From: Klebsormidium nitens
Taxonomy: Eukaryota > Plantae > Klebsormidiophyceae
Reading direction: 5' to 3'
DNA: 57,875 nt
Assembly: GCA_000708835.1 (NCBI GenBank)
Contig: DF237518.1
Coordinates: 1 to 57,875, forward strand
A model generated the notes under the pieces. That model made no database searches. It worked only from the letters and a program-made list of their open reading frames with translations, and was not told the origin of the DNA. Within the stretch, counting starts at the first letter, position 1. Each line of letters starts with the position of its first letter. Both the position numbers and the translations under genes were made by a program. This document shows, piece by piece, positions 10,959-45,537 of this stretch.

Positions 10959-11103
10959 TCTTCTTCGTCTTCGTTTTCAATCTACACATGATATGTAAGT
11001 CTCTTTTCCTTCATAATAAATCTAAGTTGGCCCAGCGCTGGGCCTTTTTCCCTGCCTCCCGTCCGGTGCGGACACAATGTCGCACCCCCCATTTTACCGT
11101 AGA

Positions 11104-11231
11104 TGTCATGCGATATGGGCTCGACATGCGATTGGGCTCGGCAAACTAGAGCGGAACGTGTGCATCGGTAAAGCGTTAAATTTACATGATGTATCATGCG
11201 GGACTTATGGACTTCATATTCATTCATTATC
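11104..11231 (-). repeat. Terminal repeat segment B, copy 2 (128 bp)
   Basis: Matches 12230-12357 with about 5 substitutions by eye. Confidence 0.95.
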
Positions 11232-12227
11232 AGGGACGGAGGGTTTCTTTCAAGAGAGAAGCCCTCAGTGAGGGTAGAAGTTATGTTGCTGAACAAGTTG
11301 AGATCTTGGAGTCACTCATGCTAACATTCAAGGCTATCCTCACCTTACCCGCATTGTCCGTCCTTGAGGCACAGCCCGCAAGAACGGTCGTGGTGCGCAA
11401 TCAGTGTTTTGGATATCCAAAATGATCAGGCAAGAGCAAACGACAAACATGGGCACATGGCACTTACTGATTGAAAGATGGCGTCGCCGGAGGCGTGAGA
11501 CATTCTGAGATGAAACGAAGATGTAACGCTGAAGGCTTATAAGGCCGGTTAAATTACTGTCGTGTTCGTACTGTTATTCTGGTTAAGTTCTCCGTGAGGT
11601 CCTTCTGCTTCCGTGGTGTTGTCGTCGCTGGTACGGTAGTGCTCCTTCGATTTTGCCGGTAGTACTGGCAACTGGTTTGAGTGCTCAAGGCACTCGGATA
11701 CGGGGTTGAACGCTCAAGGCGCTCGGATGCTGGGTTGAACGCTCAAGGCGCTCGGATGCTGGGTTGGGCACGGGTGCCCGCTGGTGATGGATAATTGACT
11801 TGAATGAAAGTCGAATTGGAAATGGCGATGCCAATTGACTTAAGTACCTCGTGGAGACTTGCTTGAGTTTGGATGTCCAAAAGCATTGTCGTGGTGGAAA
11901 TGGATGGCATGCTAATGTTGGGTTCGTACCAGGGTCCGTCACGGTTACACGACCGGTAACATAGCCGGGTATGTACCCTTAGAACGTTGTGGAAACGTCT
12001 TGGGATTGAATCCGGCAATTATAGAGATTTAGCGAATGCAACTGGTTAATGGACGTCCAATGGAATGCGTCCGTTTGTCATCCTGTTCTAGCTTGTTCGT
12101 TAGTTAAGGCATGGTTATCCTAATCATGAACAGGTCTGCTTAACCTAGTACTTGCACGCTTGCGCCACGTGTTGCACGCTTACAGGCTAGTCGAGTCGAT
12201 CTGGCATCGAGGGCATATGGCATGACA
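11232..12227 (-). repeat. Terminal repeat segment A, copy 2 (about 1 kb)
   Basis: Collinear with 27258-28244, with one 9-bp indel near 11300 and scattered substitutions. Confidence 0.95.
11678..11764 (+). repeat. 3 x 29-bp tandem repeat inside segment A (TGAACGCTCAAGGCGCTCGGATGCTGGGT)
   Basis: Three contiguous units without spacers; also present at 27695-27781. Confidence 0.9.
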
Positions 12228-12229
12228 GC

Positions 12230-12357
12230 TGTCATGCGATATAGGCTCGACATGCGATTGGGCTCGGCAAACTAGAGCGGAACGTGTGCATCGGTAAAGC
12301 GTTAGATGTACATGATGTATCATGCGGGACTTATGGAATTCATGTTCATTCATTATC
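12230..12357 (-). repeat. Terminal repeat segment B, copy 1 (128 bp), directly after the PPT
   Basis: Direct repeat of 11104-11231; separated from segment A copy 2 by the dinucleotide GC (12228-12229). Confidence 0.95.
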
Positions 12358-12364
12358 CCCCCCT
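12357..12364 (-). promoter_or_regulatory. Polypurine tract (AGGGGGGG) abutting segment B
   Basis: C7 run on + at 12357-12363; minus strand reads TTAGGGGGGGATAATG. Confidence 0.7.
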
Positions 12365-12624
12365 AAGCCACCGAGTTGTCCCAACGAGGGATAAGGCTTG
12401 TGACTGTACAGGAAATAACGAGTGGAAGGTTCGACTGCCCACGTGCATCGGTTAATTGGTTCTAGATTACGGCGGTGTGTTCATTGGTTTATCCTATCTT
12501 TCTTAATTAGTGTACCTAACGAATTGCCTGACTCCGTTGCCACCATACGAGTATGGCATCGGCTCTGACCCAAGATCGCGGAGCGGGGGCTTGGGAGCGG
12601 GTAGTTCCTTAGATATCACTACTG

Positions 12625-12894
12625 CTATATGTTGCCGTATCTTGCTACAAACCTGCGTGCACATGTTGTTGTGCAATCATTTTCTCCAGCGCTGACTTTT
12701 TTTTCAATGAACTCGAGCATGACATTCCTCGGGGGAGTGCTCATGCGGCGTGTAATTACAACGTTCTTGGGATAGTGCTCTGCGCAGTCACGAAGTTCCT
12801 GAAGTAATTCGGCCCGCGGACACTGTAGCAGTAGAAATTGACGCATAGTACTTGGTGTGCAATGCATCTCATTGTTTCGTTCGAGTACTTCCAA
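12625..12894 (-). CDS. Short accessory ORF between the two PPT-like tracts
   Basis: 89-aa ORF starting 5 nt after the upstream ORF stop; may be a frameshifted continuation of it. Confidence 0.3.
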   Translation of the reverse strand: MEVLERNNEMHCTPSTMRQFLLLQCPRAELLQELRDCAEHYPKNVVITRRMSTPPRNVMLEFIEKKVSAGENDCTTTCARRFVARYGNI

Positions 12895-12899
12895 CCTCT

Positions 12900-13220
12900 T
12901 TATACATTGTACTCTCTATACATTTTATCTATGAAAGCATACCATTGGTAGTTGGCATGCACCAAAACGTTTACCAGATCATGCCACTGATTAACTCGCC
13001 AGGCGAATAGTGCTTTCTTGTTTGGCCAGAAGCCGTGTTCCCACTTACATGCGGTCATTTTTCTTGTGTTGTCGTAGGAGACGTCATCAGGGCATGCTGG
13101 TGGTATGGGTGTGTTGTCAATAGGCGCGAGCTCGTTAAACGGTATGGGCTCGGGCGGTGGTCCCCAACCTGATGAGGTTGGTTGTTGGGTCGTTTCCTGA
13201 GGCGCCGAGCTGGACGCCAT
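12900..13220 (-). CDS. Trp-rich accessory ORF (106 aa), unknown function
   Basis: ATG start shortly after the upstream G-tract; Pro-rich N-terminus then CKWEHGFWPNKKALFAWRVNQWHDL. Confidence 0.45.
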   Translation of the reverse strand: MASSSAPQETTQQPTSSGWGPPPEPIPFNELAPIDNTPIPPACPDDVSYDNTRKMTACKWEHGFWPNKKALFAWRVNQWHDLVNVLVHANYQWYAFIDKMYREYNV

Positions 13221-13255
13221 GTTTTCCGCAGATATAATACAGTATCTTTGTTATT

Positions 13256-13264
13256 CCCCCCCTT
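13256..13264 (-). promoter_or_regulatory. Second PPT-like tract (AAGGGGGGG) just after the pol stop
   Basis: Minus strand AAGGGGGGGAATAA, near-identical to the tract at 12357. Confidence 0.55.
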
Positions 13265-13273
13265 ACTGAGCAC

Positions 13274-13423
13274 TCACACTACACAGCGTGGGCAAAACCA
13301 ATCTCTTTTGGGAATTCTACTGACCGGTGGATTTAAGCAATCCATGTGATAGCCTTCGCTGCAAGAATCGCAGATCAGCATCTTAGATGGTCGGTTGGTT
13401 TTCTTGCAGATTTGACAGGCCCA
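13274..13423 (-). pseudogene. PHD finger (C4HC3) at the pol C-terminus
   Basis: WACQICKKTNRPSKMLICDSCSEGYHMDCLNPPVSRIPKRDWFCPRC. Confidence 0.95.
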
Positions 13424-13429
13424 GTCCTC

Positions 13430-14540
13430 GTCGTATCCTGAAAGCGTAGTGTCCATTGTGAGATCAATGGTTGGATTATGACAGGGGGCACAATTCTCAA
13501 CGTGGTCTTTGATGGTTCTACCATCTCTTCCTTGTAGCCTGAGCGCACCACTCGGTAAGACTTTAGTGATTCGCAAAATGAGTCGGCCTACATTGACGTC
13601 GAGAGTGTCAACTTCCTGCGACGCAGATAGACTAGGTCCCCTACCTCAAACCGTTTAACCTTGGGGCTCCATTTCCCAGTGCGGGTCTTGGCGTACCACA
13701 GGGTGTCTCTGTGTTGTGCGGCTTGAAGGTTGCTAAAGGCAATCGGCATTGCCTTTCGAAACTCCTCGGCGCGGTGGGCAATGACGTCTGCCCGGGTTTG
13801 AGGGTCATCTAGGTTGACCGGGGTGTTGATCATGTCTCGGAGGCTAGCTCCCACTACTGGGTGGCGCCCAAACATTAAGAAGTAGGGGGAGTAGTCTCCT
13901 AGTGCAAGCTGCTTGGACATGCGGTAGCCCATGGCGATCCAAGGCACCCATGTATCCCAGGTGTCAACTGCGTGAGTTAGTACGTATTTACGAACGGCTT
14001 GTTTTGTGGTTTGAACGGTTCGTTCTGCCAGGCCGTCTACTTGTGGGTGATCCCGTGATGTTTTGCGGTGATCAATAAGAAGTTCCTTGCACAGTGTGTC
14101 AAATTCTCCCTAGAATTCTGACCCTTGGTCGGTGAGTACTTCTGCTGGTGCCCCAAAATGGGTGCATACTTGGAGAAAAGCCTTGGCTGTTTCTTCTGAT
14201 GTGTTATCAATCAGTGGAACCAGTTCTATCCACTTAGAGAAGTGCTCTATCATTACCATGATGTACCAAACCCTGTTGCTGAAGGAGGGAGTGGACCTGC
14301 GAGGTCACAACTCCATCGGTACTCTAAGCCCATTATTGGTAGGGGCTTGAGCAGTGAGTCTTTCACATTAAAGCTGGCTTTAACGCGATCGCATACCTGG
14401 CAGCTTGCTACCAACTGAGCTACCCGCTCATGCATGCCTGCCCACCAAAACGTGGGTTCTAATAACGAGTAAGTTCGTTTAACTCCGAAGTGGCCTAATT
14501 GGCGATGAATGTTGTGTACCAGTTCGGCCCTTGCTCCGGG
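13430..14540 (-). pseudogene. pol: DDE integrase with H2C2 zinc-binding domain (frameshifted)
   Basis: HRQLGHFGVKRTY..FWWAGM..SCQVCDR; RWSCDLAGPLP; core near 14040-14260 reads VLTDQGSEF..HPQVDGLAER; YSPYFLMFGRHP. Confidence 0.93.
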
Positions 14541-15463
14541 TGGTGGGACTCTCTTTGCGAGCCCATCGTTGGTTACTTTGATGAGGGTATGGTTGTCAAA
14601 CTTACACCCCTGCGCTGTGCGCCATATTCTGTCCCGTTCCTTGCGGGTTGTGTGGCTTGGGTAGGTGCAATTATCCTGCAGATATTGCATAGTGTTTGCG
14701 TCAGACCAGATATCAGTGATGAGTACTTCGCCCGAGTCGTCACCCAGGAGGTCTCCATCTTTATTTGTCCCTTGAAAGTGTGAGTTGTCTGATTCCTCTA
14801 TGTCATTAGTTGATTCAGCTAGGGGAATGACTGCGTCGGTGCCCGTGACGCCGGTAGTTGGCTCAGCTACCAAGCTTGCCTCTGATGGGGGAAGTGCTGA
14901 CTCAGATTGGGCTTGTGAAAGGGTCAGCTCAGAAGATTCGCCAGATAGAATTGCAGTTCCCTGAGTGACATGAAGATCGGGGGCGGCTGTTTGATCTTGT
15001 GCTTCGTGCGTTGGGTTGGCATTTGCTGGAGATGAGATGTCAGCACTCACCCTTGAGGCGAGTTGCCTTGAAGCGCATGCCTTAAGCTTCATGACGTGGC
15101 CTGTAGTTGGCAGGTCCCCCGTCGAAAATCTCTGCACGGGAAAGAAAGCAACGTGGCTTGTTGTTTCTGTGTTCAGGTCTCTGCTCTTTGAGCCTGCATG
15201 CACATGTCGGAATGCATGATGGAAAGGCTGGACTTCTCTATGGATTGATCGTCCCTGGCTGCTTTCAGTCGACTTAGCAGTCCATTGGTGACTGGCAATT
15301 CTAGCTAAGTAAGCAGCTATGATATTGGGCGCGTCAACCAAGGGTGGCTTGTGCTCTGTCACAATCCCCTTTGCTCCCATGGTCTTCGGACCATTGTGAG
15401 CCCCAATGTCTTTCTGACTAGTGACACATGGTTGCCATGATTCTGTGGTGATCATGGGTTCTT

Positions 15464-16007
15464 TCACTGACTCAAGCGGCTGAACGTGGTCCATTCTGGC
15501 GCCGGTTGAATCCTCTTCAGACGGAAGTGGGTGCGAGATAACCCGTCTGCATCTAGGTTTCTAATTCTTGACCTGTGTTTGATGTAGATGTCATATTCTT
15601 GAAGAATATTAGCCCACCTGGCGTGCATTCCTCGTAGCTTCTCGTTGGTCATCAGCCATTCCAACGGTTCGTGATCTATAATCAGAGTATACTTGCGGCC
15701 GTACATAATATCTGAAGTGGGAAACAGCCCAGACCGCTGCTAGGCACTCACCATGATAGCTCGAATAGTTCCTTTCCGTCTTGTTGCAACTGCGACTGGC
15801 ATAGGCAACCACATACTCGTTGCCGTCATCATCTCGTTGTGTGAGTACTCCTCCCAGCCCCTGCGCACTCCAATCGGTGTGCAGTTCAAACTCTCGGTTG
15901 AAATCGGGCCTGCGTAGGATGAGGGCTTCAGTTAGGTGTTTCTTCAGGGTTTCAAACGCTTCCTGACACTCAACTGTCCAGTCGTATGTAACTCCTTCCT
16001 GTAGCAA
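15464..16007 (-). pseudogene. pol: RNase H (Ty3 type, frameshifted)
   Basis: ELHTDWSAQGLGGVLTQ, VAYASRS, ERNYSSYHGECLAAVWAV, IIDHEPLEWL, DADGLSR. Confidence 0.95.
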
Positions 16008-16037
16008 GTGATTCAGGGGACTTGCTATCTTACTGTA

Positions 16038-16931
16038 TCATTTGACAAACTTGCGGTAATATCCCGCAGTTCCTAGTAAGGCTCTTAGTGCACTGACGTC
16101 TGGTGAAGGTGGAATTCGCAAAATAGCCTCAACCTTCTCTTCTCGCACGGCAGTCCCTTCGGAGACTATTAGATGCCCTAGGTATCCGACATCGGGTTCT
16201 GCTGTTCGCATTTTCTTGGGCTGGCACTTCAGTCCCCTTTCCCGAAGTCGCTGGGATACTTGCGTCAGGTGTGTCAGGTGTTCTTCAAAGGTTCTGCTGA
16301 AAATGATGAGGTCATCAACATAACAACGACAAAACGCTCTTTTTGCACGAAGGGTTTGGCCCATGACCTTTTGAAAGAAGGCGGGTGCATTCTTTAATCC
16401 AAACGGCATAACTAGCCACTCGTATAACCCATCTGCTCCCCAGAAAGCCGTCTTGCAGCGATCTTTTTCTGCAATCCGGATTTGATTGTAGCCCTGGCGG
16501 AAGTCGAGTGTGGTGAACAGCTTAGCGTTGCCTAGGACATCAAATATTTCCTCTGGTGTTGGTATCTGGTAGTGATCAGTAACACTTACCCTATGAAGGC
16601 CGCGATAGTCACCGCAAGCCCTTCGTTGTGTCCAGTCTCCATTCTCATCCTTCTTTGGTGGCATCGTGATCGGGGAGGCCCATTGTGATGTGGATGGTCT
16701 AATGAGTCCATTCTTGAGGCGTTTGGCTACTTGCTGTGCGAGATCCTCTTTTTCTGTTTGTGCCAGGCGGTATTGATGTTTGAACACTGGCGTTTCATCG
16801 GTGACTGGGATTTCGAATTCTACTCCAGGTATCGTGGTCATCTCCTTCATGCTGAAGGCAAAGATGTCCCTGAAGTTGTCTAGAAGTTCTGTTAGCTGAC
16901 TCTTTTGTTTGGGTGTCAGGGACTGTCCCAT
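16038..16931 (-). pseudogene. pol: Reverse transcriptase
   Basis: SQWASP, CGDYRGL, FTTLDFRQGYNQI, MPFGLKNAPAFFQ, CYVDDLIIFS, YLGHLI. Confidence 0.97.
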
Positions 16932-17543
16932 GGGCCAACTCCATTCTTCTGTTTCCTCTGCAGTCTTATCAGTAGCTTCTTTGCTCCCTGCAGGTGCTTT
17001 GCTCCGACATGTAGTTACTGGTTCAGGTGAGTTTGTGTTAGGTGGGGTTTTCTCAGTTAACCCTTACTTGCTTGTGACTCCTGGTCTGCTCAGCACTTGT
17101 GTTGTATCTGAGCCTGAGTTGAGAGTCTTGTGCTCGCTTGGCGAGCATTCCCTGCCCTTCCCTGCGCGTCTCAGTTGAAGTCTGGCTTCTTGTCTGCTGA
17201 GAGGGTGATCAGGGCGCTCTGCGCTTGTGTTCAACTAGCTGTCATTGCTTCCTTCCAGCGTCTTCTCAAGGTTGCCGGTTGTTTTCAAGCGGTCGTTGGC
17301 GAAGCGAATTTCGTTCTGATAGTGGTCTCCCCCCCCCCTTGCATAGGGAATATATCATCATGGGCGTTCACTATGCACTCGTGTGCGGAAATTGGGGTGT
17401 GATACAATTGAGCGTTGATTAAGTGTAGCTAGTTGGTAAAGCTCATTGTTTGATATGAGTCTGGAAGTAGGTATGTGGCTAGTTTGTGCTAGGTGAGTCA
17501 CGCTAGCGGGTCGGAGCTTGGTTAGCTGTGACTCGGCGCGCCG

Positions 17544-18530
17544 TCAGTTGAGGAAGAAGGTGTGTTGAAAGACCATGATGGCTCCCATGATGAATTTTAT
17601 TTGGAACATGTCCATTGTTCCTCCTAGCATGGGCATACAATCTGCTTCTGAGACTCGGTGATGATTGCTTGTGCCGACCATGAATCCCATGGCGGCCTCG
17701 CGTTCATTGGCCGTGGGTTCCTCCAGCTGTCCCGTGTTAATATTTGTGAGTAAGCTGTGCCCGTTATTACGGTAGGCATGGGAACCTTTGACCGTGACGA
17801 AGTGGAGAATGCCCGTAGTGGCTTCCCAATTTCATTGACTACATAATTGCCGGGCACTGATTCATGCGCGGCTAATCGAGCCTCGTGATGAGGCTCCTGG
17901 ATGTCGCTAACTGACTCGATTAGTAAACGTGTGGGCTACCGTATTCTCCAATAGTTTATCAGGAACTCCATTTGTCCAAAAGCGCCGATGGCGGTGCGCG
18001 TATGATCCAACGGCCACAGCGTCAAATGCTACACCATGTCCTAATATTCCTTTGACTATGTGATTATATTCATGGGCGACTTGTGCGTCGCAATGATCCG
18101 TTGCATCCACATTTTCAAACAGCCAGACACATGGGCCATGATATTTATACACTGCGCAGACTATCTCTACGCACTTGTAAAATAGTGCAGTGCGCGTGTC
18201 GCGCAGACCGAGTGGTCGCGTGGCTGCCGAGGAGAACCCTTGGCATGGAAATCCAACAATAATAATATCTGGTGGCTCTAGTGTAGCTATGTGTTCATCT
18301 GTGACTTCTAACAGATCCGGTGGGAGATGGTTATGACTATTTACCACTGCATCTTCCGAAATGAGGTGTGGGAACAATTTGGCGAGAGTGGCCAGCCGTT
18401 GCTCAGCCACGTCTCGGCTGCATTCTTCCAATTCACATGCGTAAACTTTTCTAATGTTTATGCCTGTGCGCACGAGACTTTTGTCGCTGCGCACAGTCCT
18501 GAACAGAGTTCCAAAACAACTAGGCCGTGG
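17544..18530 (-). pseudogene. C5 cytosine DNA methyltransferase domain (DNMT3-like) between protease and RT, about 3 frameshifts
   Basis: Motif I LVVLELCSGL (about 18490-18525); IV IVGFPCQGFS (about 18233-18262); VI WLFENV (about 18108-18125); VIII AHRHRRFWTN (about 17972-18001); IX EEPTANEREAAMGF and X MLGGTMD in a frame not in the ORF track (about 17716-17600). Confidence 0.92.
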
Positions 18531-18883
18531 CTATTTACAACCGACTGTTCATGAATGTCTACAAGATTAGGATCCAATGGAGATCCAAAACGAGCTTCTA
18601 ATTGGAGGGCCGGCTGTGCCGGCTCTGTCAAACTACGTATAGTTCGCTGAAACTTAGCAAGTATGCTATGTGTTTCTAGCTGATCTCTAAACTCTAATTG
18701 GAGCCGGGTGGCTCTCTCCTCGTGCGGCGTCACGGGCGCAGGAACTGGTCCGGTGCACAACTGTACAATGCTGATGGGGGCCTGGGAGCGCGTGGCGTCG
18801 TCAGGCGCCCTGCATATGACAAGGTAGCTTAACTAATGCGTGAGCTTGTCGCAGCGCTGATGCAGGTGTTGACCAAGTCCACA

Positions 18884-19340
18884 TTAAAAATGGATGGAAG
18901 TTCCGCGGTGGTTGCGTTTTCTTCCCACCACATGGGGTAATACGTAACGGTTTGGTGATGGGTTTAATGTTAACCCGATTCTACCAATTACGCTCATTCC
19001 TATCAAAGTTTCTTTGGTCTGTGAAGGAACTATGGTTAGTTTAACCTGGACGGTGGTCGCGGCGGAGGTTCCTGGATCAACAGAAATTTCGACTGTGTCC
19101 CAAGTGCGATCAACGGGTGCCGTGGTGACGGCATCCGCTGTGATTAAGCTGATGGCTTTTCGTTGTCGCATTTCTGGCGCAATTCCCAACTTTTTGGCTG
19201 TCCAATTGGAAATTATAACACTTTCGCAGGCGGTGTCAACGGTTAACCATTCCAGAGCAACACCGTTAATCAGGAAACAGGGGTTAGGTCCTGAATTGTC
19301 TATCCTAGGTGCGTGGTTAATCCTGACACACGTTCTGAAT
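18884..19340 (-). pseudogene. Retropepsin aspartic protease
   Basis: Upstream extension of ORF 18884-19189 reads FLINGVALEWLTVDTACESVIIS (DTA at 19229-19237); later ETLIGMSVIGRIGL. Confidence 0.8.
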
Positions 19341-19881
19341 GGCTGACCAATGACATTTTGTTTGATTTGGCATACTCAATTGGGCTTAAGAATTGTTGAA
19401 ACGACCGCGCGTGCTGTTGGGCTGAGTTGGCTTGCTGGACTGGGAGATCGCAGAAAGCCAACGGCGGTGCGTAAATTCTGTGCCTTATAGCAGAAGGCTG
19501 TTTTACTTCACACCAAGTGTAATGTCGGTGAACACCTGACGCGGTAGCATGCAGAAACTGTGATGCTAAGCACAGTCGCATGAACAACGCAACAGTCTGC
19601 CACGCGGTGCGAAACCCTTCTGTGATTTCCACATCCGTAATTGGTTTTTGAAAACTGTAAACCAATGGCTCTGGCTCTAGCAGCCAGCGAGATTTGACCA
19701 AAATTTTCAGTCCTTCCTCCAACAAAGTCAAAAGTTTGTTGGGGAGACTGTGGGCGGATGTCAAATGAAACTCTAATTCTAAATCGGCTGTTAATTCTAA
19801 TAGTCGATTCACAGCCTGCCTCTGAACAAGTGGTAATCCTCTGGCTGTGGAAGCTGGGGTTAGTTCTGAGGTGGGCAATTC

Positions 19882-22019
19882 TCATTCTTGGTTCAAATCT
19901 TGTTCCCGTGACGATTTGGCTTGGTGGGCTGTCCATCGTGATAGCCAAAACATTTTCAAATTTTGTATGGCTGTCCAAAACGTATGCGTACTCACCACAG
20001 CTTGGTCGTCGTTGTCGGGATCGTCGTCATCGTAGCGGCGGCGAAGGGGTCCCCTGGCAGGCGGGTACAGCTCCTCAGGGTCGATGGTGGCCAGCTCAAC
20101 AGGGGCTAGCAGCTTTTTCTTCTTGCGACTGGGGGGCTGCTCCGTGTCGGCCTCGGCCGCGTGGGCGACGAGCTGCTTGCGTGGGAGGCTCACGTCCTGG
20201 CGCTGGCGGTCCTTTCTCTTCTTCTTGCGCGGCGGTGCGTCCGCGCTGTCAGGTACCGGCGTCTCACGGACCAACTCCGTGTCCGTTCGCGTCGTCTTCT
20301 TGACGCGCTCCACAGGTACAGTGGCGTCCCTGTCCACGCTGATGACGGAGCGCGGGGACTTGGCGATGGGGCCTTTATTGCCCTTGCAGCGCAGCGGCAG
20401 GGGAGAGTCCTCCTTTGGGCCTGGGCCCCGGAGTCTGACGGCGATGCGCCGTCCTTGGCGGTCTAGGCCGCCGAGTGGGTGTTGTCCTGGGGGGTCTGCT
20501 GGTCGCGGGGGCCCAGGTCGTGCCCCAAGACCTCTGCGGTGGCGGCGGCGTCTCCCGCGGTCTCCTCCAGGTCAGGGCCGCCCTGATCCTGCAGGTCGGG
20601 GGCGTCCTCCGCTCCCTAGTCCTCGGGCTGGTTCTGGCCCTGGTTCTCCGGCTGACCGCCCGCAGCGGCCTGAGTGGCCGGGATGTCTTCTTCGTAGAGG
20701 GGGGCGTTCGGCCCCATGACGTTCTGGTACAGGGCGGTGACCATCTTGCGCAGGGGGATGGGGCGCGCTGGTTTGATGGGCCGGCCGGGGTGCTGCGCGT
20801 CCCAGTTCTGCTCCATCTCCTTGGCCTTGTCGATGGACAGGATGCATCGCTCGACCGAGGCGGCGTCTTGCATGGGGAAGAGGTGGTGCTCGACGGCGAT
20901 GATCCGCTTATCGATCTTGCCCGCGTGCTTTTCCTTGTTCTTGAGGGGGATGCGGCGCTGGATGAGGCACATGATGAACCCGATGTAGTCCTTCCTCCAC
21001 TGGTCCGTCATCTTCCGGAACTCGGGCAGGTCGTCGTCGTTGGTGATGACGTGGGTCTTGTGGAAGGGGCTGAGGCGGTCCTTTCCAGGGAGCGCCTGGC
21101 GCGGCCGCTGCATAGCGTTGAGGCGGTCCCGCAGGACCAGAGTGTCTTCTGTGCAGGGGGGCGGGTTCTCTGCATAGGGGAAGATGGGAAAAAGGTCATC
21201 CCACTCTTCCTCTTCCACTCCGGTCAGGTCCTCGCTGTCGGTTCCCTCCGTTTCCGAGGGAACGTAAGCGTCTCCCGAGCTATCAGAAGGACTTTCCTCT
21301 ACGGGCGATTCTGATTCTGTCCCTGAGCATGCATCTGAGCCCTCTGATTCTGACGACTCTGACGTCATGGCATTGTCCTGGACATTCATTCCTGCCACCA
21401 CTTCCGAGGGAATGTCAAGTTCCTCTAGTTCAGAAACGTCCATGATGTCGTGGGTGGGTGGCGGCTGTGACCCACTGGGCTCGCTCGCATTTTGCATTTC
21501 CGGCTTTTTCGGGTTCTGGGGTTCCTCAAAAGGCAATTCTACGGACTGCCCACCTGCTGCATTGCTTTGCTCCTTGTCCTGCGCACGCCTCTGCGCGGCG
21601 CCAGATGCCTCTGCAGCGGTCCCCCGCTTTCCCCGCTCCTCCTGATGCCTGGGCCGAAGGTTTTGTGCCATGGTGCGTGGGCGCTGTGGCGAAATGATGT
21701 GCTGGTGGCAGGGAGTAACCGCTGACTCTGCGGTTAAGCTGAGAAGAGAAGTGGCTGCCTCCGCAGCCCTTGTGGACAAGACAAATGGTGAACTGTCCCT
21801 GGATAGGGTGACCGCTCCGGAGGGAACAATTGGCTGGGTAGGCTCAGCCATGTCTTGTAGCAGAATTTCTTCAAGCCGAATGGCAGACTTGTAGTCGACT
21901 GTCAAGTCGACGTTTCCAAGCTTGGATGTAAGTTTGCTAGTCACTTTGTGACATTGGGGCATGCTCGTGCATGAGTCCGCAAGACTCGCACGTGCTGCCT
22001 TTTCCAGGTGGATTGTCAA
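19882..22019 (-). pseudogene. gag-protease linker ORF containing a GC-rich inserted coding segment (about 19996-21290)
   Basis: 467-aa ORF 20616-22019 and 151-aa ORF 19882-20337; abrupt switch to G/C-ending codons after an acidic Ser-rich stretch. Confidence 0.6.
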
Positions 22020-22250
22020 GGTACTTGATTCCTTTGGACATCCACCAGACTCAGCTGCTGGTAACTAATGTGGGGCTTCTAGCAAGTTTGGTGTTAATAG
22101 TTAACTTGATTTGAGCCTCTTCTGACTCAAGTCCTGAACTAGATTGGGCTGACGAAGTAGACCCTGTGGGGTCTAGGCGTCATTGCTGCTAACTGAGCAA
22201 TTTGTTTGGCTTGTTCCTCTGGTGACAGTGACAGTGACTGGAACCCAAAA

Positions 22251-24473
22251 TTATAACCACGGGGATCCCTTTTTGAGCAGAGCCTGGAATTCCGGGTGGG
22301 GATTCTTGTAGCTATTGGGGTTTGGTTCTGCTGGGGGTGTCCTAGGACTGCCTATTAACTGTGGATCAGCAGGATCCTTCCAATATTCATAATCCTTATG
22401 ATGTTTATTGGTTACGATTGGTGGTAGCTTGGCCACTTCTTCTAATTCCTTGGTCATTTTAATACTGCGCATATGTTTTTCACGTTCCTCCTTCCTTCTT
22501 TGGGCGTCAGTTCTGAGTTGATCTTTCAAGTTTCGGTATGAAATATGGCATTTCTCGAGCCTCAGCTTTTGTAATTTCTAGGGATCGAAAAGTGTCCGAT
22601 TTTGCAGTGTAATTGATAGTGTTACTATTGTCGTCATTTCCCCCCCCTCGCATTGGAACGAAATTTCTCAATCTCCTTGCTGGGGCGAAAACTTAATGGC
22701 ATGTCGGGATTCCGCCTGAGAAATTGCGTTTCAGTGCGCTGTCGAGAGTATTTCTTTTCTGTCCGCTTTCGTTCACGCTTTTTGGTGACAGTTGCCGGTT
22801 CTGGTTTGGTTAATTTGTCTTTATTTCGCTTGCGCTGAGCCGCTTTGGCTTGTGTTTCATCATGTATTTTATTTTCGAGATTTTCCAAATCAAATTCGAA
22901 TTGTTCAATCCTGTCTTGATATTCCACAGCCTGCGCGCGCGCCTGCTTGACATGTATCGGTAGGGGATTTTCTGATGCTATTTCATGGGAACTGGCGGGG
23001 CTGGATCCTCGGGAGGAATATGCGTTTGAGATTTAATGGCGCTTTTCATACTCTTTCCAGAGTTCCTTTTTCTGTGCGCTGTCATTGGTCCCTCGGTTGT
23101 TCCGGCAGCTGTGAACGGCTGCGGAACTCCGAGTGGGTTGATTACGTGGCCGGGTGGCCAGCTCACTGTCAGGATGTAGTGCGATGCATTTAGATGAATC
23201 ATGTGTGTTTATCCGATGATGTGTACACCATGGTTTGCCGGGTATGTGTTGATTGATAGGTCCATTTGTGACAGGTCGGTTTGGACATTGGGCAGCTTGG
23301 TGCCCCTGGCATCTGGTGACATCTCAAACATGGGCCTGGTTGAAATGAAGTGGGCGCAGTCTGCGCTGTCTTTGCACTTGTTTTATGGGGGTTACTCCGG
23401 CAGTTGGCTGCTGAGTGCCCTGTACGTCCGCAAACTTTACACTTGGGCTTGTTGCTCCTATATTTATTATCAATCTGAGGATGGTTATTGTTAGTAGAAC
23501 TATTTTTAGACGTAATGGTCTTTGGATTTAATAACTTCTCTTGGTTTATAATCTTCTCAAGCTTTTCAGCCTCTGACCGTACTAGTTCTACTGTCCATGT
23601 GCTAATGTCTTCATATTGAAACTGTAACTTTGTACGCAACTTAGACTGTATGTTCCACGGCAAAGCATTGAGTAGCTTCTCAGCTGCCTTCGTCTGTGGT
23701 TGCTTAAGGTCTAATGCTAATTTGGACATACGTTGACTAGCTGTAGTAATTGATTCATTCTCCTCCACCTTGAAGTCTCCATAGGCTTGTATCTTGGCAG
23801 CCGAATCCTTTGGATATGCCTGCAAAAGACGAGCCCACAATTCAGTGACTGGATCGCCCAGAAAGGTTGTAATTGTTAGAGGTTCTGGTGGCAAAACTAG
23901 CCGGACAGCCGTTCCGCGTTGTTCTGCGGTCTGAGCATCCCATGCAGTTTTGGCCTGTTCCTAAGTGAGTTTGCCTCTAAGGTAGTTGGATTGCAACGCC
24001 GCATTGTGTGTTGCTAACTCCTCTTCCTTTTCTGTGAGGAGGGCAAGGCAAGTATCATGGGCTGCCCCGCCCGTTTTGAACATGATCACATGAAATTTGT
24101 TAGTGGTGGTCAGCCTGTCATAACCTGCTTGCAACTTATGTGTGGCCTCGCAGGCTGCATAAGTTGAACGTAGGTTGTCCAAAGTGACAGATGATTTTGG
24201 CTCTCCTGTGAACTTATGATTAAATGAATCAAGTTCCTTGAGTGCCATCTTTACTGTGACGGATGATCCTGAGTTTGCTAAATCAAATTTTTCAGACGCG
24301 TCAGTGGCCTGAGTGACAGCAGAGGTCTCACCTCGTACGCTTCTTTGTCGGCGGTTCCCCCACTGGATAAAGGGTGGCCGCGGCCCTTCGGTCTTGTACG
24401 ATGAACCTTGGGCGTAAGGATTCTGAAGTTCTCTGCGGAGCTGGTATCCGTCTTCAGAATTTAAATTGGACAT
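22251..24473 (-). pseudogene. gag: gag (frameshifted) with zinc knuckle(s) and coiled-coil tail
   Basis: CKVCGRTGHSAANC (23400-23441), second degenerate knuckle CLRCHQMPGAPSC, capsid-like DFKVEENESITTASQRM..LLNALP; K/E/R-rich coils at 22251-22927. Confidence 0.75.
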
Positions 24474-25654
24474 GGATATCCTTTGTTGTTTCGGATATCC
24501 AAAATGTCGTTGCCGAAACTGTTTTGGGCAGCAACAATTGTGCTTGGGTGTCTGTCCAAGTCTACTAGGTTGACCTTATCCTACTGCAGAAGCTTATTGA
24601 ATTCTGCCAATAGGGACTACTTTCCAATTACTGCTTTTCCTTTGACCTTTTGGCGTTTGCTAAAAGGGATGATGCGGACAACAGAAAACTGTCACCTGTG
24701 GCTATGGATGCGGTACTTTATAACTACAGGGGTCTTATCTACTTCCGAACGCAAGGGGTGGGTACACTCCCCTTGAGCTTGCCAGTCGTGTTTATCCTTC
24801 CAAGATTCCCTTTTCAGGACGCACATCTAGTATGCTAACTGGACTCTATCACTAGCTGTTTCACATAGACTCTGAAAAGCTCAGAGCCTCAATGTCCACT
24901 CAACCTGACAGGGGGTTATAACTTTGTCAGGGGCAAATTAAAACAAATCCTGCTCCAGTGGGGTGATTTCCACTTTAGACAAAGAGCGGCATTGGCTAGA
25001 CAGCCAATGTCTCTGGTCCCTTGGATTTCCTGCGCAGTCGACAAATGGCAGCCAACAAGCAGTAAATGAAAGACTCTTCAATCAACTAATTGTAGTCTCA
25101 GGTAATTTGGGTCCAATCCCACCAGTCAGACAATAGTTCTCAGTAACTGACACAACAAAAAGGCAGCGCCTTTCTGGATCACAACCATCCGCACGTGTGG
25201 TTTTTCCGCACGATAACATTTTCACTCTACAAGTCAGTCTGTAATGTCACCCGCGCTCTACCGAGTAGTCGGCGAACCGTACATCGGGTTTTCAACGAGT
25301 GCAAATTTTCGGGGACTTCACCGTTTTTCGGAGTCCGAATTTGCCCGTAAACAGGGGCAAATTGCGATATTGCACCTATATGAGAGAATATTTTTGGCCG
25401 TAGGTCGAAATTGAAAATTCTGTGCAGTGGCTGTCTCCAGGACATCCCCCTGATGGTCTTCAACATTTTTTACGGACTTGAATTCCAAACAGTAGAGCTC
25501 TGCCCAGGCCTAAATATGTCTAAATATTGATTTTGCACTCAAAACCCCTGAAAAACCCGCTGTGAAATCGACATTTGCGTCGCAACCTTATCGTGAGGAG
25601 TTCTTGGCGCAGCCCGCTTTTCTCGGGATGGTTGTGATATTTTTGGTCCTTACC

Positions 25655-26311
25655 TTATCCCTGAAGTAGGGGTTCGTAGTAGTTGTAGGTCTTTGTCTTC
25701 CAGGGAAGGCCCTTGTAATGCTTCTGGTGATGTGGCTGGTACGGCTGAGGGTGCGGCGCGTACTTGGGAAACAGCTGCGGCGGGCGATAAGGGGCCAGTT
25801 GGTAGTGGCCTTTGTACGCCAGGTTATTGTTATCCAGTCGGGTGAAGACAAACGGGTTGTGGTACGCCGGGCCCTGATGCAGCCTTCTTGCCGCGGGGGC
25901 AAAGTGCACACGTCGGTTGCCTCCGAAGCCTGGGGGCCTGGGAGTGTCGGTGCGGTGCTGCTTGCGCCAGTTGGCGTTGTGGACCACTGGGGCAGGGGCA
26001 GGGGCAGGTTTGGGGACCCGGTTAACAGGACGGCGGTGCGGGTTGTTGACGGGGACGGTGTGTTGGCCGCTCCGTCGCTGACGCCGCGGCTTGGAGAGGC
26101 GGATGTCCGGGGTTTCCCTGATGGCTTTGTACACCCCGTGTTGTTTGGTGGTGACGTAGCGGTGTTGAAGGCCGGTCTTCCGGGCTGCTAAGCGGTGACG
26201 CTCAACGGCCTTGGTACCGTCCAGGGCTACGTGTTGGGCAAACAGGGTATCCGCCCGCGTGACAGCGTGCTGCAGCCGGGCTTGGTCGATATCGTCAGTC
26301 TGGGCTGCCAA
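25655..26311 (-). CDS. GC-rich ORF (218 aa) in the long leader, unknown function
   Basis: Open 218 codons, Pro/Arg/His/Tyr-rich; reading frame and start uncertain. Confidence 0.3.
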   Translation of the reverse strand: MAAQTDDIDQARLQHAVTRADTLFAQHVALDGTKAVERHRLAARKTGLQHRYVTTKQHGVYKAIRETPDIRLSKPRRQRRSGQHTVPVNNPHRRPVNRVPKPAPAPAPVVHNANWRKQHRTDTPRPPGFGGNRRVHFAPAARRLHQGPAYHNPFVFTRLDNNNLAYKGHYQLAPYRPPQLFPKYAPHPQPYQPHHQKHYKGLPWKTKTYNYYEPLLQG

Positions 26312-26345
26312 CTGTTGCTCTGGGGTGGGCTCACGACGGTCCTAG

Positions 26346-27222
26346 TCAGAGCTGCCAGGTGCTGATGTTGACCTTCAGGCTGCTGCGAAACGCTCTGGAC
26401 GGGCGTCCAGGGCACTGATCTGAGGTATGGAGGATTGAGTTAGGCCCGCAGCGGTTACACTGGGGCAGACTGGAATGATGGGGAGATGAGGGCGGTGTTG
26501 AAGATAGGCTGGGGACGACAGAACTCCGCCGGCTTTTGATGGCGGGGCTGATGGGGGCGTCGACACGCTCCAAGAGTCCGGGAACACTCTTTGCGTTCTC
26601 CTCCCAATTGGAGTTCTGTAGGTGGAGAATGTGGTTAGTTGTTCCAGGCGTCCGATGCACACTGGCAGCGGACACGCACCAAGTAGAATCCTGAAATGTC
26701 CAAAACTAATAGGACTGAATGGATGTTTGGATGTCCGTTCACTGTAATCTGTCGCTGTATGATTCCGGCTATGACTGGTCTCCAAAGGTCCTTCTGGACT
26801 GTTAAGCGCTGTGTGCCGACAGAAGGTCCGACAGGATCGTCCGTAAAGGTTGTCCTGAGGGGCCGGGTGAGTAATACGAATGCAGACACACTATTCCACT
26901 CCTGCGCTGAAGACTGGCACACTGGACAAGCGAGTGACTTCCAAGTTTCTAATTGCGGACCAATGTAATGTCTGATATCGGCGTAAAGTTGGTCCACCCC
27001 ACAGAGATCGTCCCAGATCCTGTGCTGATATGGATATTCACTTAGATCCCCCACAAGACCTGACTGGCGATACTGCCACGGCAGCTGCTGATCTATTCTC
27101 CGCTGAACCGCAATGGCAATTTCTAGTCTATCCGATTCCCACAATCCAGTTGGGTTTCCAACACCAAAGTTTGTCAATCCAAGCAGGCTAATTCCTACTG
27201 TGGAACTCCGAGAAAAGCTCAT
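26346..27222 (-). pseudogene. Decayed upstream ORF with a zinc-knuckle-like motif
   Basis: 195-aa ORF starting 35 nt inside the element, plus adjacent frame with CNRCGPNSILHTSDQC (26412-26459). Confidence 0.35.
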
Positions 27223-27242
27223 TCACGCGACATTTCTGCCCT

Positions 27243-27257
27243 GACTTTCATTCAAGT
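27243..27257 (-). promoter_or_regulatory. Putative self-priming primer-binding site (ACTTGAATGAAAGTC)
   Basis: Immediately follows segment A on the minus strand; perfect 15-nt reverse complement at 27815-27829 inside segment A; no TGG tRNA-type PBS present. Confidence 0.75.
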
Positions 27258-28244
27258 AGGGACGGAGGGTTTCTTTCAAGAGAGAAGCCCTCAGTGAGGG
27301 TAGAAATTATGTTGCTGAGATCTTGGAGTCACTCGTGCTAACATTCAAGGCTATCCTCACCTTACCCGCATTGTCCGTCCTTGAGGCACAACCCGCAAGA
27401 ATGGTAGTGGTACGCAATCAGTGTATTGGATATCCAAAATGATCAGGCATGAGCAAACGACAAACATGGGCACATAGCACTTACTGATTGAAAGATGGCG
27501 TCGCCGGAGGCGTGAGACATTCTGAGATGAAACGAAGGTGTAACGCTGAAGGCTTATAAGGCCGGTTAAATTACTGTCGTATTCAAACTGTTATTCTGGT
27601 TAAGTTCTCCGTGAGGTCCTTCTGCTTCCATGGTGTTGTCGTCGCTGGTACGGTACTGCTCCTTCGATTTTGCCGGTAGTACTGGCAACTGGTTTGAGTG
27701 CTCAAGGCACTCGGATACGGGGTTGAACGTTCAAGGCGCTCGGATGCTGGGTTGAACGCTCAAGGAGCTCGGATGCTGGGTTGGGCACGGGTGCCCGCTG
27801 GTGATGGATAATTGACTTGAATGAAAGTCGAATTGAAAATGGCGATGCCAATTGACTTAAGTACCTCGTGGAGACTTGCTTGAGTTTGGACGTCCAAAAG
27901 CATTGTCGTGGTGGAAATGGACGGCATGCTAATGTTGGGTTCGTACCTGGATCCGTCACGGTTACACAACCGGTAACATAGCCGGGTATGTACCCTTAGA
28001 ACGTTGTGGAAACGTCTTGGGATTGAATCCGGCAATCACAGGGATTCAGCGAATGCAACTGGTTAATGGACGTCCAATGGAATGCGTCCGTTTGTCATCC
28101 TGTTCTAGCTTGTTCGTTAGTTAAGGCATGGTTATCCTGATCATGAACATGTCTGCTTAACCTAGTACTTGCACGCTTGCGCCACGTGTTGCACGCTTAC
28201 AGGCTAGTCGAGTCGATCTGGCATCGAGGGCATATGGCATGACA
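27258..28244 (-). repeat. Terminal repeat segment A, copy 1
   Basis: Direct repeat of 11232-12227; begins TGTCATGC on the minus strand; lacks segment B on either side. Confidence 0.95.
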
Positions 28245-31200
28245 TAGATTCCCTGCTAACGGCGGGGTTCCGACCATCAGATCGCCGTCGGAGGTCCCGA
28301 AAACGTAAGCTTGACACTGTGATTGGCAGAGACTGAGAAGCATCAAGCATGTCAAGTCCAAGTCATGCTTGAAGTATCTCACCCCGAATCAACAGGTCGG
28401 GATAGCCTGTCACACGGCACACCTCCTTTAGCATCCGATGAACGTCGCACTTTGGAGCCTGGAGTTGGATACAACTGGGTCCGAACCGGGTACCAGGTTG
28501 AATACCCGTGGGTTCAGCGTGGGTACAAACCGCTGTGTACTACCGACCGATGCGCGTCGCTAAACAGTGATCTGCGACAACTTTCTTCTAACTTCAACTT
28601 TGCCCAAAGTTACCAGCAAAAACGATTTTATAATTGCGGCCGGCTGAGGTGACCGTCCGGGCGCTCTTTAATACGGTCTGCAGGTTTGAAGTTTGGCCGA
28701 ACGGTCGGGACGCGGCCGTACCTGATTCTGAGATTTTTGCAACGTGTCGGTCGACAAACTGATCAAATCAAGCATTCATTAATGAACCGTACCACGTGCG
28801 TACAGTATGTTTGAAACTTAGGTACTGTGTGTCAGGGGAACAGGGCCCGTGATCGTTTGCCGGGCACTTTTAAGGTCTACAGATCATACTATAATACTCG
28901 CCTACCGGCCTTTGATTTTGACCGGTAGGCCGGCCGCCCAAAATCTGTACCGGGGTCTGCCGGCGCTTCTCCACCCAGCCTGGTTCAGTTTACATTCAGT
29001 ACTAGTCACCAGTGTGCTCCAGCACCGGGACCTCGAAGGTGTACATCTTTTAAGTACTTGGGCCAAATTTAATGAAATTTAGTGAAATTTAGGCCGCAAC
29101 GCGGTGAACCTTCAGTGTTAGGATTCGCTCCACGGTACACTGACTAAGGTTTCAGATAGGAAACAGCCTTAGTTCGAAAAAGAAGTGTTGAGCTGGCCAA
29201 TCAGAAAGCCGTAGTTGGCAATGTCGCACCCTCGGACATCCGGCCGCCCGCGGGAGGCAGGGAAAAAGGCCCTGATCCCGTACTCAGATTTCTTATCCTT
29301 CTCGCTCCGGGACGAGCTCCCAGCGAGGGAATAGAGAATACAGCTGTGCTCTGCCCTCTGTGGATGTCCCACCAGGGTTGCGCGCGTATAGGATTGTGAC
29401 ACGTGGCGTGCAGACACTTGCTGCTGCTGCAGAAACATGTGTGCGCGCTAAGCCGCGGCGCGATATAAGTTCGACTCGCACGAAGCAGAGTTTGGCACGG
29501 GGAGTCTTTGGTGACCACGTGCGATTGCGGAGAGCCGCTCGATGAATAAAGAGTCTAGAACTACCGTAGATCGATAAGAAGGAATCCAACCGTTGGTCGA
29601 TACAAGTTAGAAGGCTTTGCGGAGAGAGACTAGCCCTCCGCTTTAGTAACGTGACTGGGCAAAGGAACTCAATATCTCATTGAGAACCTGCGCTAAGTCG
29701 TGTTTGGTCTATCGTGCAGGTTCTCTATGGGGCCTCCTTCCGGAGTCTTTTACGAGTCCTGGCGACCTGCGTCATACATAAATAAGGGTCTTTTGGACGT
29801 GGGGTAGGGCCACACAACACTTTGGCCAGAATCGGTAGAAGTTGAAAGATTTGTGGAACTTTAGCTCGTTCCTTGTGTTTCAGATTTCCTAGCTTTTGAG
29901 ATAGAGCGCAGAGGCGCTAAGAAGAGCAGGAACAGGAGATCCATAGCAGCACAGCCCAAGGGGCTAGTGCGCTGTGTAAGCACTAAGTCATTCTGTGTGG
30001 CTTTAAGGCATGACGCCTTGTTATGTTCCAGGTATTGTTGCCCCTCATTGCATGAGTGCTGCGTGACTACCGTCACTGCGCACAGTCTCCGCAGGAAGAA
30101 TGCTCATGGCTAATCAGGGAACTACCCTTGTGATGGTATAACATGAGATGTGCCCCCGAGCACAAGTCAGTGAGTGCATTGCTTGTGTGAGTGAATGAAT
30201 GATGAATGAAAGCTTCGCATATGTAATTGCAGTCTAAAAGTTGCCCAAAGCAAGTGTAATGGGACACTTGTGCATTTGCTGGAGAGCTACTAGGTTCCGG
30301 AGAGCTGTGGTTTGAAAGGCACACGCTACGCACACAAATTCCGCTGCGCAGGCGACTTACCGCGGCTTACCGCGCAGGCCTTGAGCTGGCCGCGTCGCGC
30401 CGCACGCACTAGTGCGCCGAAACTCGATCGCCCCTGCCACGTGGCACTAAACCCCGAGAGTGGGCAGTGGCCGGAGGGGGGGTGTTCTCTAGAGAATAAA
30501 CGGGGTCTGAGTCGCCCGAAATAGGATTGGATGCAACGTCATTTGAATCGTCACTTCTTGACTTCCTATTGATCATTCGGACGGTCATAATGAATCGATC
30601 TTTGTATCAAACGGTCATCCGGGGGCCACTCGATGATCTGATTTCGTCTTACAAAACCGATCATACCCTCTCTTATATCTCCCTCTTTACCACTTTTCTT
30701 CTTTTTTTCTCTCTTTTCTCTCTTCTTTCTCCATGTATCTTGGCTGTGAGTGGCTGTGAGTGGGACCCCACCTGCGATATACTAGATAATACCTATGTAC
30801 AAGGCCGAAAGTACGATCTATACACTGAAGTGCTGAGGAATGTACCAATTAAACCGTGCCGCCGAGCTGCCCATGCGTCGCAGGTTAGGTGGTTAGTCAG
30901 TTAGGGTTGGTCAGGAGCCGCCTCGGTCGAGTCAGAGCCCATAGGCAATGTAGTTAGGCAGTCAGTCAGCGAGTCAGTGAGGAGATTAATATGTTCCGGC
31001 GACCAGTTAGTCTGGTCAGGCTCCATTGAAATCGTCCGAACTACCCCCTATTGTAGCCTACAGCTAGTGCATGCAGCTAGCATTGTCCACGATTCCGCGT
31101 GTGGACTGAATAAGCGGGCCCTTCTATAGGGGAAGGGAGGGGGCCCTAAGAGGATGATGATAACTAGGCAAATCGGCGGGCCGTTTTTGGGAATAGCAGA

Positions 31201-31544
31201 GCATGCGTGAAGGACGCTTCGCACTGGCTGAAATGCACCCGAGAGTCTTGACTGGATTAGGATGAGAAAAAGTGGAAGCGGCAAAAGCTTGGTGTCACAA
31301 GTGAGAAAGCTTGAAGGCCCGTCGATCGACCGGCCTCTACTGGACGCCTCCGAAGCACTTTGGGCCTTGTTCTGGACCCGGCCTACCTGATGATGAACTT
31401 AGAGGGAAATAGATAGGGGGTATATACACCTACTATAGCGTTCGAGGATGACTTGTGTATATAGTGTATATATATGACCCTCTATATAAGCAATTGAATG
31501 ATGAAAGTGAACACCTTGTGATTATTCATGCGGGCCCCATTGGA

Positions 31545-39291: not shown

Positions 39292-39550
39292 TCACTTTTT
39301 AGTAGTTATCATGCGGCTAGGTGGTCTGGCTGCCTCAACCTTCAATCATTCAATGGCTGGCCCACAAATGGCCTCAATGCTATCAATGGCCCCAACCTGG
39401 CAACTCGTCACGACGTAACTCAAATTCTGATGTGATGGCATTGAATGTTGTGCACAATGTTTGAATGTTGGTAGGTTGCCTTCCAGACTTCAACACGGCG
39501 GCTTGCGAGGCTCGCCGGTCCCCTTACGCTCCACTAAGATTTCAATGAAT

Positions 39551-39820
39551 AGGCCTATCTTGGACCCGGAGGTCGCAGAGTCACGGTGAAAGTCGCGGAC
39601 GAAAGTCGCGGAAAGTCGCGGAACGTCGCGGAGCATTGCAAGCATCTAAACATGAAACTTGCTTCAAAACATGTTTTCCAAGAGTTTATAAGGTTGCGGT
39701 GAAGGTTGCAAAGTTCGCGGAACAAAGTCGCGGAACAGTCGCGGAACAGTCGCGCAGAATCGCGAAAAGTCGCGCAACGTCGCGGGCAACTCTGGCAACC
39801 TCCGGGCCCAGGATAGGCCT
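39551..39820. mobile_element. MITE-like non-autonomous DNA element
   Basis: Imperfect TIR of about 33 bp (AGGCCTATCTTGGACCCGGAGGT.. / ..ACCTCCGGGCCCAGGATAGGCCT), internal GTCGCG repeats, flanked by ATGAAT on both sides. Confidence 0.75.
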
Positions 39821-40846: not shown

Positions 40847-40858
40847 GCAGTCCCCCCC

Positions 40859-45494: not shown

Positions 45495-45537
45495 GGGTGC
45501 TTGGTAGGAGGGTCAAGAGGGAGGAGGGAGAAGGATC

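Follow-up and report, generated by a model that had tools for sequence, protein, structure and literature searches.

How can a retroelement with the integrase of a gypsy element come to lie in the genome in a repeat order that is the hallmark of tyrosine-recombinase elements? The question is raised by a gypsy element of the alga Klebsormidium nitens, located on the minus strand of contig DF237518.1 (assembly GCA_000708835.1) in the window analysed here, that is, the whole stretch of 57,875 nt, whose coordinates are used throughout. The long terminal repeat (LTR) sequences of this element are split into two segments, A and B, in the order A1-internal-B1-GC-A2-B2. An initial annotation of the window had explained this order by integration of a two-LTR (2-LTR) circle of the complementary DNA (cDNA), opened at an internal attachment (att) site. 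Our analysis indicates that such permuted integration is the best explanation of the element, and we consider it likely to be correct.

Split repeats, ends and target site

On the minus strand, the element consists of a target-site duplication (TSD) TCTA, A1, the internal region, a polypurine tract (PPT) closing in a G run, B1, GC, A2, B2 and again TCTA. Repeat finding, self-BLAST and direct reading reproduced to the base the order and coordinates put forward by the initial annotation, and direct reading agreed with it on the 4-bp TSD (TAGA on the plus strand), the TG..CA ends and the CA-GC-TG palindrome. The element begins with TGTCATGC and finishes with GCATGACA; its minus-strand flanks read ..AATCTA before A1 and TCTACGG.. 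after B2, the two perfect copies of the TSD lying at 28245–28248 and 11100–11103. A1 (27258–28244, 987 bp) starts at TGTCATGC, finishes in ..CCGTCCCT and contains the 3′ part of U3 followed by R and U5. Directly adjoining its end is the primer-binding site (PBS) ACTTGAATGAAAGTC (27243–27257), with which the internal region of about 14.9 kb opens. This region closes in ..TTAGGGGGG, and the PPT (12358–12368) directly adjoins B1; the same G run precedes B1 in all relatives. B1 (12230–12357, 128 bp), which begins with GATAATG and finishes with GCATGACA, represents the 5′ part of U3. It is followed by GC (12228–12229), A2 (11232–12227, 996 bp) and B2 (11104–11231, 128 bp), the last of which is fused exactly to the final base of A2 and also finishes with GCATGACA. 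The passage from B1 to A2 thus forms a palindromic putative att site, GCATGACA-GC-TGTCATGC (12220–12237).

Where a Ty3/gypsy element has two complete, identical terminal LTRs, this element has A only at its 5′ end and B-GC-A-B at its 3′ end. The unit defined by the PBS and the PPT is B-GC-A, which is never terminal in the integrated copies, and the arrangement is that of the split direct repeats (A1-internal-B1-A2-B2) of PAT-like DIRS elements. A1 and A2 are 97.1% identical (29 mismatches and one 9-bp indel over 987/996 nt), and B1 and B2 are 96.1% identical (5 mismatches over 128 nt). The two pairs have diverged to a similar extent, in keeping with members that were identical when the element inserted. 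The A2/B2 joint matches the end of A1 fused exactly to the start of B1, which is the sequence expected of joined cDNA ends and had been read as such in the initial annotation. Runs of N occur in the window only at 529–1140 and 50697–50716, and none falls within the element.

Recurrence of the layout in sister copies

Nine further independent copies were obtained, from another K. nitens scaffold and from long metagenome contigs of two Joint Genome Institute (JGI) samples. The 3′ part was PPT-B-GC-A-B in seven of them, while one ended within A2 and one had a single B. Four of the seven have the layout of the window element: L004, which reads TCCC, A1 (TGTCAGGC..), internal region, GGTTAGGGGGGG, B1 (..GGCACGACA), GC, A2, B2, TCCC; L022, with the TSD GCGG; L014, whose A1 is without its first ~34 bp; and L015, in which B2 extends past the end of the locus. 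In L019, the reverse element of L002 and L025 (second K. nitens scaffold), the 3′ part is PPT-B-GC-A-B and the 5′ ends lie beyond the available sequence. The copy ending inside A2 (PPT-B-GC-A) is L001, of the L004 family. In L017/L018, PPT-B is followed by unrelated DNA and the 5′ end is outside the locus; this single-B end could be an A-internal-B insertion, the other permutation or a B1/B2 recombinant.

Ordinary LTRs were found in none of the copies examined, and B was missing from the 5′ LTR at all six readable 5′ ends. Perfect 4-bp TSDs were present in the three copies readable at both ends (TCTA in the window, TCCC in L004 and GCGG in L022). Across copies B is always short (111–161 bp), and A ranges from 310 to 996 bp. 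The 10-bp core of the palindrome, GACAGCTGTC, occurred 10 times in the 336 kb examined, against ~0.3 expected; every occurrence sits at the B/A junction of such an element, and the core is invariant across lineages. The reverse transcriptase (RT) of the sister copies is only 53–65% identical to that of the window element, which indicates that several old lineages have the layout in common, and the window copy is itself a diverged lineage, with 43–64% amino-acid identity to other K. nitens copies. The split layout therefore belongs to the lineage and is neither a local rearrangement nor an assembly artefact, as the initial annotation had anticipated in treating it as more than a one-off.

The joints between A and B vary. 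The joint is exact in the window and in L022 and, as far as the U3 side goes, also in L025; L014 shows a 2-nt overlap. L004 has lost the final 10 nt of U5 at its joint; A1 of both L004 and L001 retains these bases, and homologous bases adjoin B2 in L014 and L022. The joint of L015 is without the first 8 nt of U3 and has 5 nt added. To judge from these sequences, the variation resembles the products of end joining, as would be expected if the joint were made anew at each insertion.

Three further loci were set aside. L005, a K. nitens gypsy element from the RT search, is a different LTR element with many N gaps; L021 is uninformative, having a PPT with no palindrome or repeat in the available sequence and a 5′ end off the contig; and L024 (GCA_030144725.1) lies in a duplicated, complex region and was not used for architecture. 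A search of metagenome contigs with the 413-aa integrase-region open reading frame (ORF) gave no matches, and one with the alignment of the DNA methyltransferase (DNMT) described below gave only short contigs or an unrelated 29% match, uninformative for architecture. The copies in metagenome contigs also serve as targets for nesting: in L002 a second DNMT-carrying gypsy element (11576–17178) is inserted in reverse orientation within the RNase H region of one copy, and in L015 an ordinary gypsy element (8559–15579) is nested inside the DNMT-carrying copy.

A putative self-priming site and the predicted cDNA

At all 15 positions, the sequence that follows A1 in the window matches the reverse complement of a motif located 415 nt inside A, GACTTTCATTCAAGT (27815–27829 in A1, recurring in A2 at 11798–11812), which is the putative self-primer and transcript start. 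An ungapped scan found complementarity between the PBS and the A motif of 15/15 nt in the window, 14/14 in L004 and L001, 13/13 in L014 and 12/13 in L022. Given that the sequences of PBS and motif differ between copies and yet stay complementary, the pairing appears to have been maintained by compensatory changes in four lineages. Folding of 27235–27829 likewise gives a minimum-energy structure in which motif and PBS are paired (z = −3.7). These data suggest that the PBS abutting A1 is a self-primer site like that of Tf1, with a putative transcript start; this mode of priming is known for Tf1/Tcn1 elements (PMC6317226). No clear TATA box was seen upstream of the putative start. Two ordinary gypsy elements of the window, described at the end, provide internal controls: their LTRs are normal and their TSDs measure 5 bp, and the nested one (40423–45981) carries a PBS of the tRNA type, beginning with TGG. 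Within A, the putative start is closely followed by a 29-bp unit repeated 3.3 times (27689–27783 and 11672–11766).

The position of the putative self-primer motif would place the beginning of the transcript, and with it that of R, inside A, with U5 at the end of A. Because the PBS adjoins A1 and the PPT adjoins B1, the standard strand transfers would yield [B-GC-A]-internal-[B-GC-A]. The initial annotation had derived the same product from the two positions, and the apparent self-priming nature of the PBS now adds to it. No templated step of reverse transcription would copy an A/B joint, which lies outside the predicted transcript, so that damage to the joint would not be inherited.

Coding content

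All recognisable domains of the window element lie on the minus strand and every one is disrupted by stops or frameshifts. They comprise a gag fragment with a CCHC zinc knuckle (23202–23894), a broken aspartic protease region found by tblastn with relatives (18962–19327), a C5 cytosine DNMT domain with GFPCQGFS and ENVD motifs (17589–18622), RT (RVT_1, 16041–16931), RNase H (RT_RNaseH_2, 15612–16007), an integrase with an H2C2 zinc finger and an rve core in frameshifted pieces (13618–14705) and, C-terminal to it, a PHD finger (13277–13576), which is also present in L018 (5105–5323) and L019 (12329–13351). In the relatives, the region homologous to the protease gives weak, below-cut-off Pfam aspartyl-protease matches. 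The DNMT was identified by its match to Pfam DNA_methylase; the subtype label Dnmt3 used below comes from a published family name and not from this match.

The Ty3/gypsy domain order (gag, protease, RT, RNase H, integrase) is present in the window element and in the intact relative L004, the additions being the DNMT between protease and RT and the PHD finger after integrase. Intact relatives encode gag with two CCHC knuckles, protease, DNMT, RT, RNase H and integrase. Alignment of the L004 integrase with the integrases of Ty3 (7q5b) and prototype foamy virus (PFV) revealed that D, D and E are all conserved, and a DDE integrase is conserved in every lineage examined. A tyrosine recombinase (Phage_integrase) was absent from the ORFs scanned, namely those on both strands of the window element, those of L004 and L022, and the called genes of the other loci. 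Domain scans and the alignment of the triad thus support the earlier assignment to gypsy elements with a DDE integrase and without a tyrosine recombinase. The PHD finger and the DNMT suggest chromatin-directed targeting or self-marking; an ordinary gypsy element of the window has a chromodomain (55434–56504, plus strand) after its integrase, at the place of the PHD finger.

Between RNase H and the integrase zinc finger lie ~317 residues of unknown sequence (14545–15494, minus strand), compared with ~145 residues in L004; this intervening region has few homologs, the best being P0121 on a 12-Mb contig of GCA_030144725.1 (L024), also with a PHD finger. Between gag and protease, a 467-codon ORF (20619–22019, minus strand; 62% G+C) encodes an acidic, Ser/Pro-rich sequence without a Pfam match and looks like a disordered spacer.

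Proposed integration as a circular permutation

Taking the anatomy together with the sister copies, we propose the following life cycle. Transcription would start inside A1, ~415 nt from its TG end, and terminate in or just after A2. The first 13–15 nt of the RNA would fold back onto the PBS abutting A1 and prime the minus strand as in Tf1, and the G-run PPT abutting B1 would prime the plus strand. The finished linear cDNA, [B-GC-A]-internal-[B-GC-A], would have termini (GATAAT.. and ..GTCCCT) without TG/CA. The DDE integrase of the element is predicted to bypass these termini and to nick 3′ of CA on both strands at ..GACA-GC-TGTC.. of the upstream LTR. This would produce two CA-3′OH ends with 2-nt 5′-GC overhangs, to be inserted 4 bp apart in the target. 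Host end joining would connect the original cDNA termini with each other, in the simplest case in advance through formation of a 2-LTR circle, and their joint would become the A2/B2 junction. The resulting provirus, A-internal-B-GC-A-B, would be a circular permutation of the cDNA.

Several observations agree with this scheme. Each end of the integrated element corresponds to one half of the palindrome, the central GC being lost, and every base of the locus can be derived by opening a circle at the upstream-LTR palindrome. CA-3′OH ends with 2-nt 5′ overhangs are the normal substrate of strand transfer, and a 4-bp TSD fits a DDE integrase. Cleavage of the kind postulated has precedents: PFV integrase cleaves the palindromic LTR–LTR junction (CA-AT-TG) of 2-LTR circles on each strand directly after CA, which produces 5′ overhangs of 2 nt (PMC1180852), and the integrase of human immunodeficiency virus type 1 (HIV-1) cleaves its own LTR–LTR junction similarly (PMC1905944, PMC4372172). 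The joining of the cDNA ends could precede or follow the action of integrase, and the 2-LTR circle is a putative obligate intermediate. On balance, it seems fairly probable that an entire Ty3/gypsy lineage obligatorily integrates through an internal, palindromic att site resembling a circle junction, giving proviruses that are permuted cDNAs.

The following points weigh against this conclusion. A 2-LTR circle has two identical palindromes, so that a symmetric model expects about half of the insertions to have the form A-B-GC-A-internal-B. This form, which the initial annotation had predicted, was seen at none of the 10 readable 3′ ends (eight B-GC-A-B, one truncated, one single B) and at none of the six readable 5′ ends; with p = 0.5, one or fewer in 10 has a binomial probability of ~0.01. 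Opening of a circle at the att site stands as the best explanation of the locus, and the second insertion form expected from a symmetric circle is missing. The ungapped scan found no complementarity between primer and PBS in L015. The sample is small, drawn from two scaffolds of K. nitens and a single pair of metagenome samples that are related to each other, and the circle, the linear cDNA, the transcript ends and the integrase activity are all deduced from DNA. As to the one-sided outcome, the palindrome used lies 111–161 bp from the left end of the cDNA, which is also its distance from the ligation joint, and choice of the palindrome by its closeness to an end would be a natural explanation.

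Alternative explanations

The one-sidedness bears most directly on the alternative that survives best, in which permuted integration takes place without a pre-formed circle. Here the integrase would act on linear cDNA and cut the palindrome 111–161 bp from the left end; both new CA ends would be inserted and the original termini end-joined by the host afterwards or, in another order, the released B fragment would be ligated to the right end before strand transfer. This would account for the constant use of the upstream-LTR palindrome as well as for a B that is always short (111–161 bp) beside an A of variable length (310 to 996 bp), and the heterogeneity of the joints fits end joining equally well. 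Yet the integrase would have to hold a short free fragment, and the insert-first order would leave a transient break in the chromosome, whereas 2-LTR circles are a well-known by-product and cleavage of palindromic circle junctions by integrase has precedent (PMC1180852, PMC4372172). The order of events is not readable from the sequence. We regard integration without a circle as unlikely, though it deserves serious consideration, and prefer the opening of a circle at the internal palindrome.

Two other possibilities fare far worse. A tyrosine recombinase supplied in trans might insert circular cDNA by site-specific recombination at the B/A junction, as in DIRS, PAT and Ngaro-like elements, whose split-direct-repeat layout is indeed A1-internal-B1-A2-B2 (PMC8969392, PMC5890265). 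The perfect 4-bp TSDs in all three copies readable at both ends contradict this, as do the TG..CA ends and the loss of the central GC on insertion; moreover, a DDE integrase is conserved in every lineage with no tyrosine recombinase domain in the scanned ORFs, and RT, RNase H and integrase are all of the gypsy type. Recombinase-mediated insertion is accordingly very improbable. The true LTR might instead be A+B, integrated in the ordinary linear manner, with B lost from the 5′ LTR and B1-GC a functionless fossil of an old LTR–LTR circle junction. Taken alone, A2-B2 does resemble a normal LTR with 8-bp inverted ends, and CA-GC-TG looks like a circle junction. In every copy, however, the PBS follows A rather than B and the PPT precedes B rather than A, so that a 5′ LTR of the form A-B cannot be regenerated by reverse transcription; the primer motif sits inside A, and B is missing from the 5′ LTR at 6/6 readable 5′ ends. 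An LTR of this composition is hardly credible.

A one-off rearrangement or assembly artefact of an ordinary LTR element (a tandem LTR formed by recombination, or collapse of repeats in short reads) might be suspected from the N gaps in other LTR elements of the K. nitens assembly (L005) but has a negligible chance of being right and is refuted by the layout of at least eight independent copies with different flanks and TSDs in three assemblies and several diverged lineages, there being no Ns in the window element and the positions of PBS and PPT being such as to regenerate B-GC-A, not A-B, in each cycle.

Relation to known elements

The initial annotation had treated this layout as undescribed for any gypsy lineage. 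This was wrong: the legend of Fig. 4c of de Mendoza et al. (2018, Nat Commun, PMC5890265) gives a DIRS-like repeat arrangement with Gypsy domains for KnitGypsy-Dnmt3 of K. nitens. The window element shares with that family its host, a C5 methyltransferase placed within pol among gypsy domains, and the DIRS-like repeat order, and belongs with it; it is an old, inactivated copy of a DNMT-carrying Ty3/gypsy lineage of Klebsormidium of the KnitGypsy-Dnmt3 type. The 2018 paper differs from the present analysis in giving the layout one sentence, with no anatomy or mechanism in its main text and supplementary legends, where the TG..CA ends, the 4-bp TSD, the CA-GC-TG palindrome, the putative self-priming PBS, the position of the PPT and the heterogeneity of the joints are not reported (PMC5890265). 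No further paper mentioning the family was found in the literature searched. The layout has thus been known since 2018, and the explanation of its origin is unpublished as far as the literature searched shows. New here are the putative Tf1-like self-primer site abutting A1, with its compensatory changes, and the end-joining-like variation of the A/B joints.

DIRS-order elements (PAT, TOC1 and some Ngaro) share the order A1-internal-B1-A2-B2, which implies a circular or end-joined intermediate. They encode a tyrosine recombinase and have neither a TSD nor TG..CA ends, whereas the window lineage has a DDE integrase, 4-bp TSDs and TG..CA ends and, unlike them, drops a 2-bp spacer on insertion. 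In the Tf1/sushi and Tcn1 elements the PBS pairs with the beginning of their own transcript rather than with a tRNA (Lin and Levin 1997; Neumann et al. 2019, PMC6317226), and the PBS of the window lineage would be of this kind; Tf1 differs in having ordinary LTRs and integrating linear cDNA ends. The 2-LTR circle junctions of retroviruses resemble the palindrome in that CA-NN-TG is cut after CA on both strands (PFV, PMC1180852; HIV-1, PMC1905944, PMC4372172), cutting being predicted here. In retroviruses the palindrome arises by ligation and cutting restores the normal linear order, whereas in the window lineage each LTR already contains the palindrome and the joint made by ligation would be retained in the provirus, resulting in the permuted order.

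If permuted integration is true, retroviral-type integrases can naturally use an internal att site in place of the cDNA termini, and the joining of cDNA ends into 2-LTR circles, usually deemed a dead end, would be a required step of a life cycle. The lineage would be a natural DDE-integrase version of the long-abandoned model of the circle junction as att site. In a 1984 Cell paper, Panganiban and Temin reportedly found that spleen necrosis virus could integrate from a copy of the junction engineered into an internal position, which would be the artificial counterpart of this lineage. The split-direct-repeat layout would have arisen independently with a DDE integrase, in convergence on DIRS/PAT. 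LTR finders will misplace the boundaries of such elements, given that A1/A2 are not the element ends at the 3′ side and the reverse-transcribed LTR is never terminal. The culturable algal host makes the system testable, and the DNMT and PHD finger of the element would tie integration to chromatin.

Other elements in the window

A young, apparently intact, ordinary gypsy element of the chromovirus type occupies 40423–45981 (minus strand). It has 426-bp LTRs of 98.4% identity with TG..CA ends, the 5-bp TSD CCAGC, a tRNA-type PBS (TGGTAT..), a gag ORF (44382–45494) and an uninterrupted 1087-aa pol ORF (41005–44265). One intact pol of an ordinary gypsy element in the window shows 98% identity to a K. 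nitens protein. A second ordinary gypsy element at 48015–56858 (plus strand), with the 5-bp TSD CGGGA, has its 3′ LTR at 56504–56858 and the integrase-chromodomain ORF mentioned above; its 5′ LTR is recognisable over only 169 bp and its interior is degenerate. The repeats at 38890–57532 were considered as a second A-internal-B-A-B element and rejected. They represent a tandem duplication of a ~2.1-kb unit (38890–40422 plus 45982–46570, and 46571–48014 plus 56859–57532) with one of the two ordinary gypsy insertions in each copy. RT fragments of other retroelements were found at 2438–3265 and 31455–32780 (both plus strand), and the scaffold is transposon-rich throughout.

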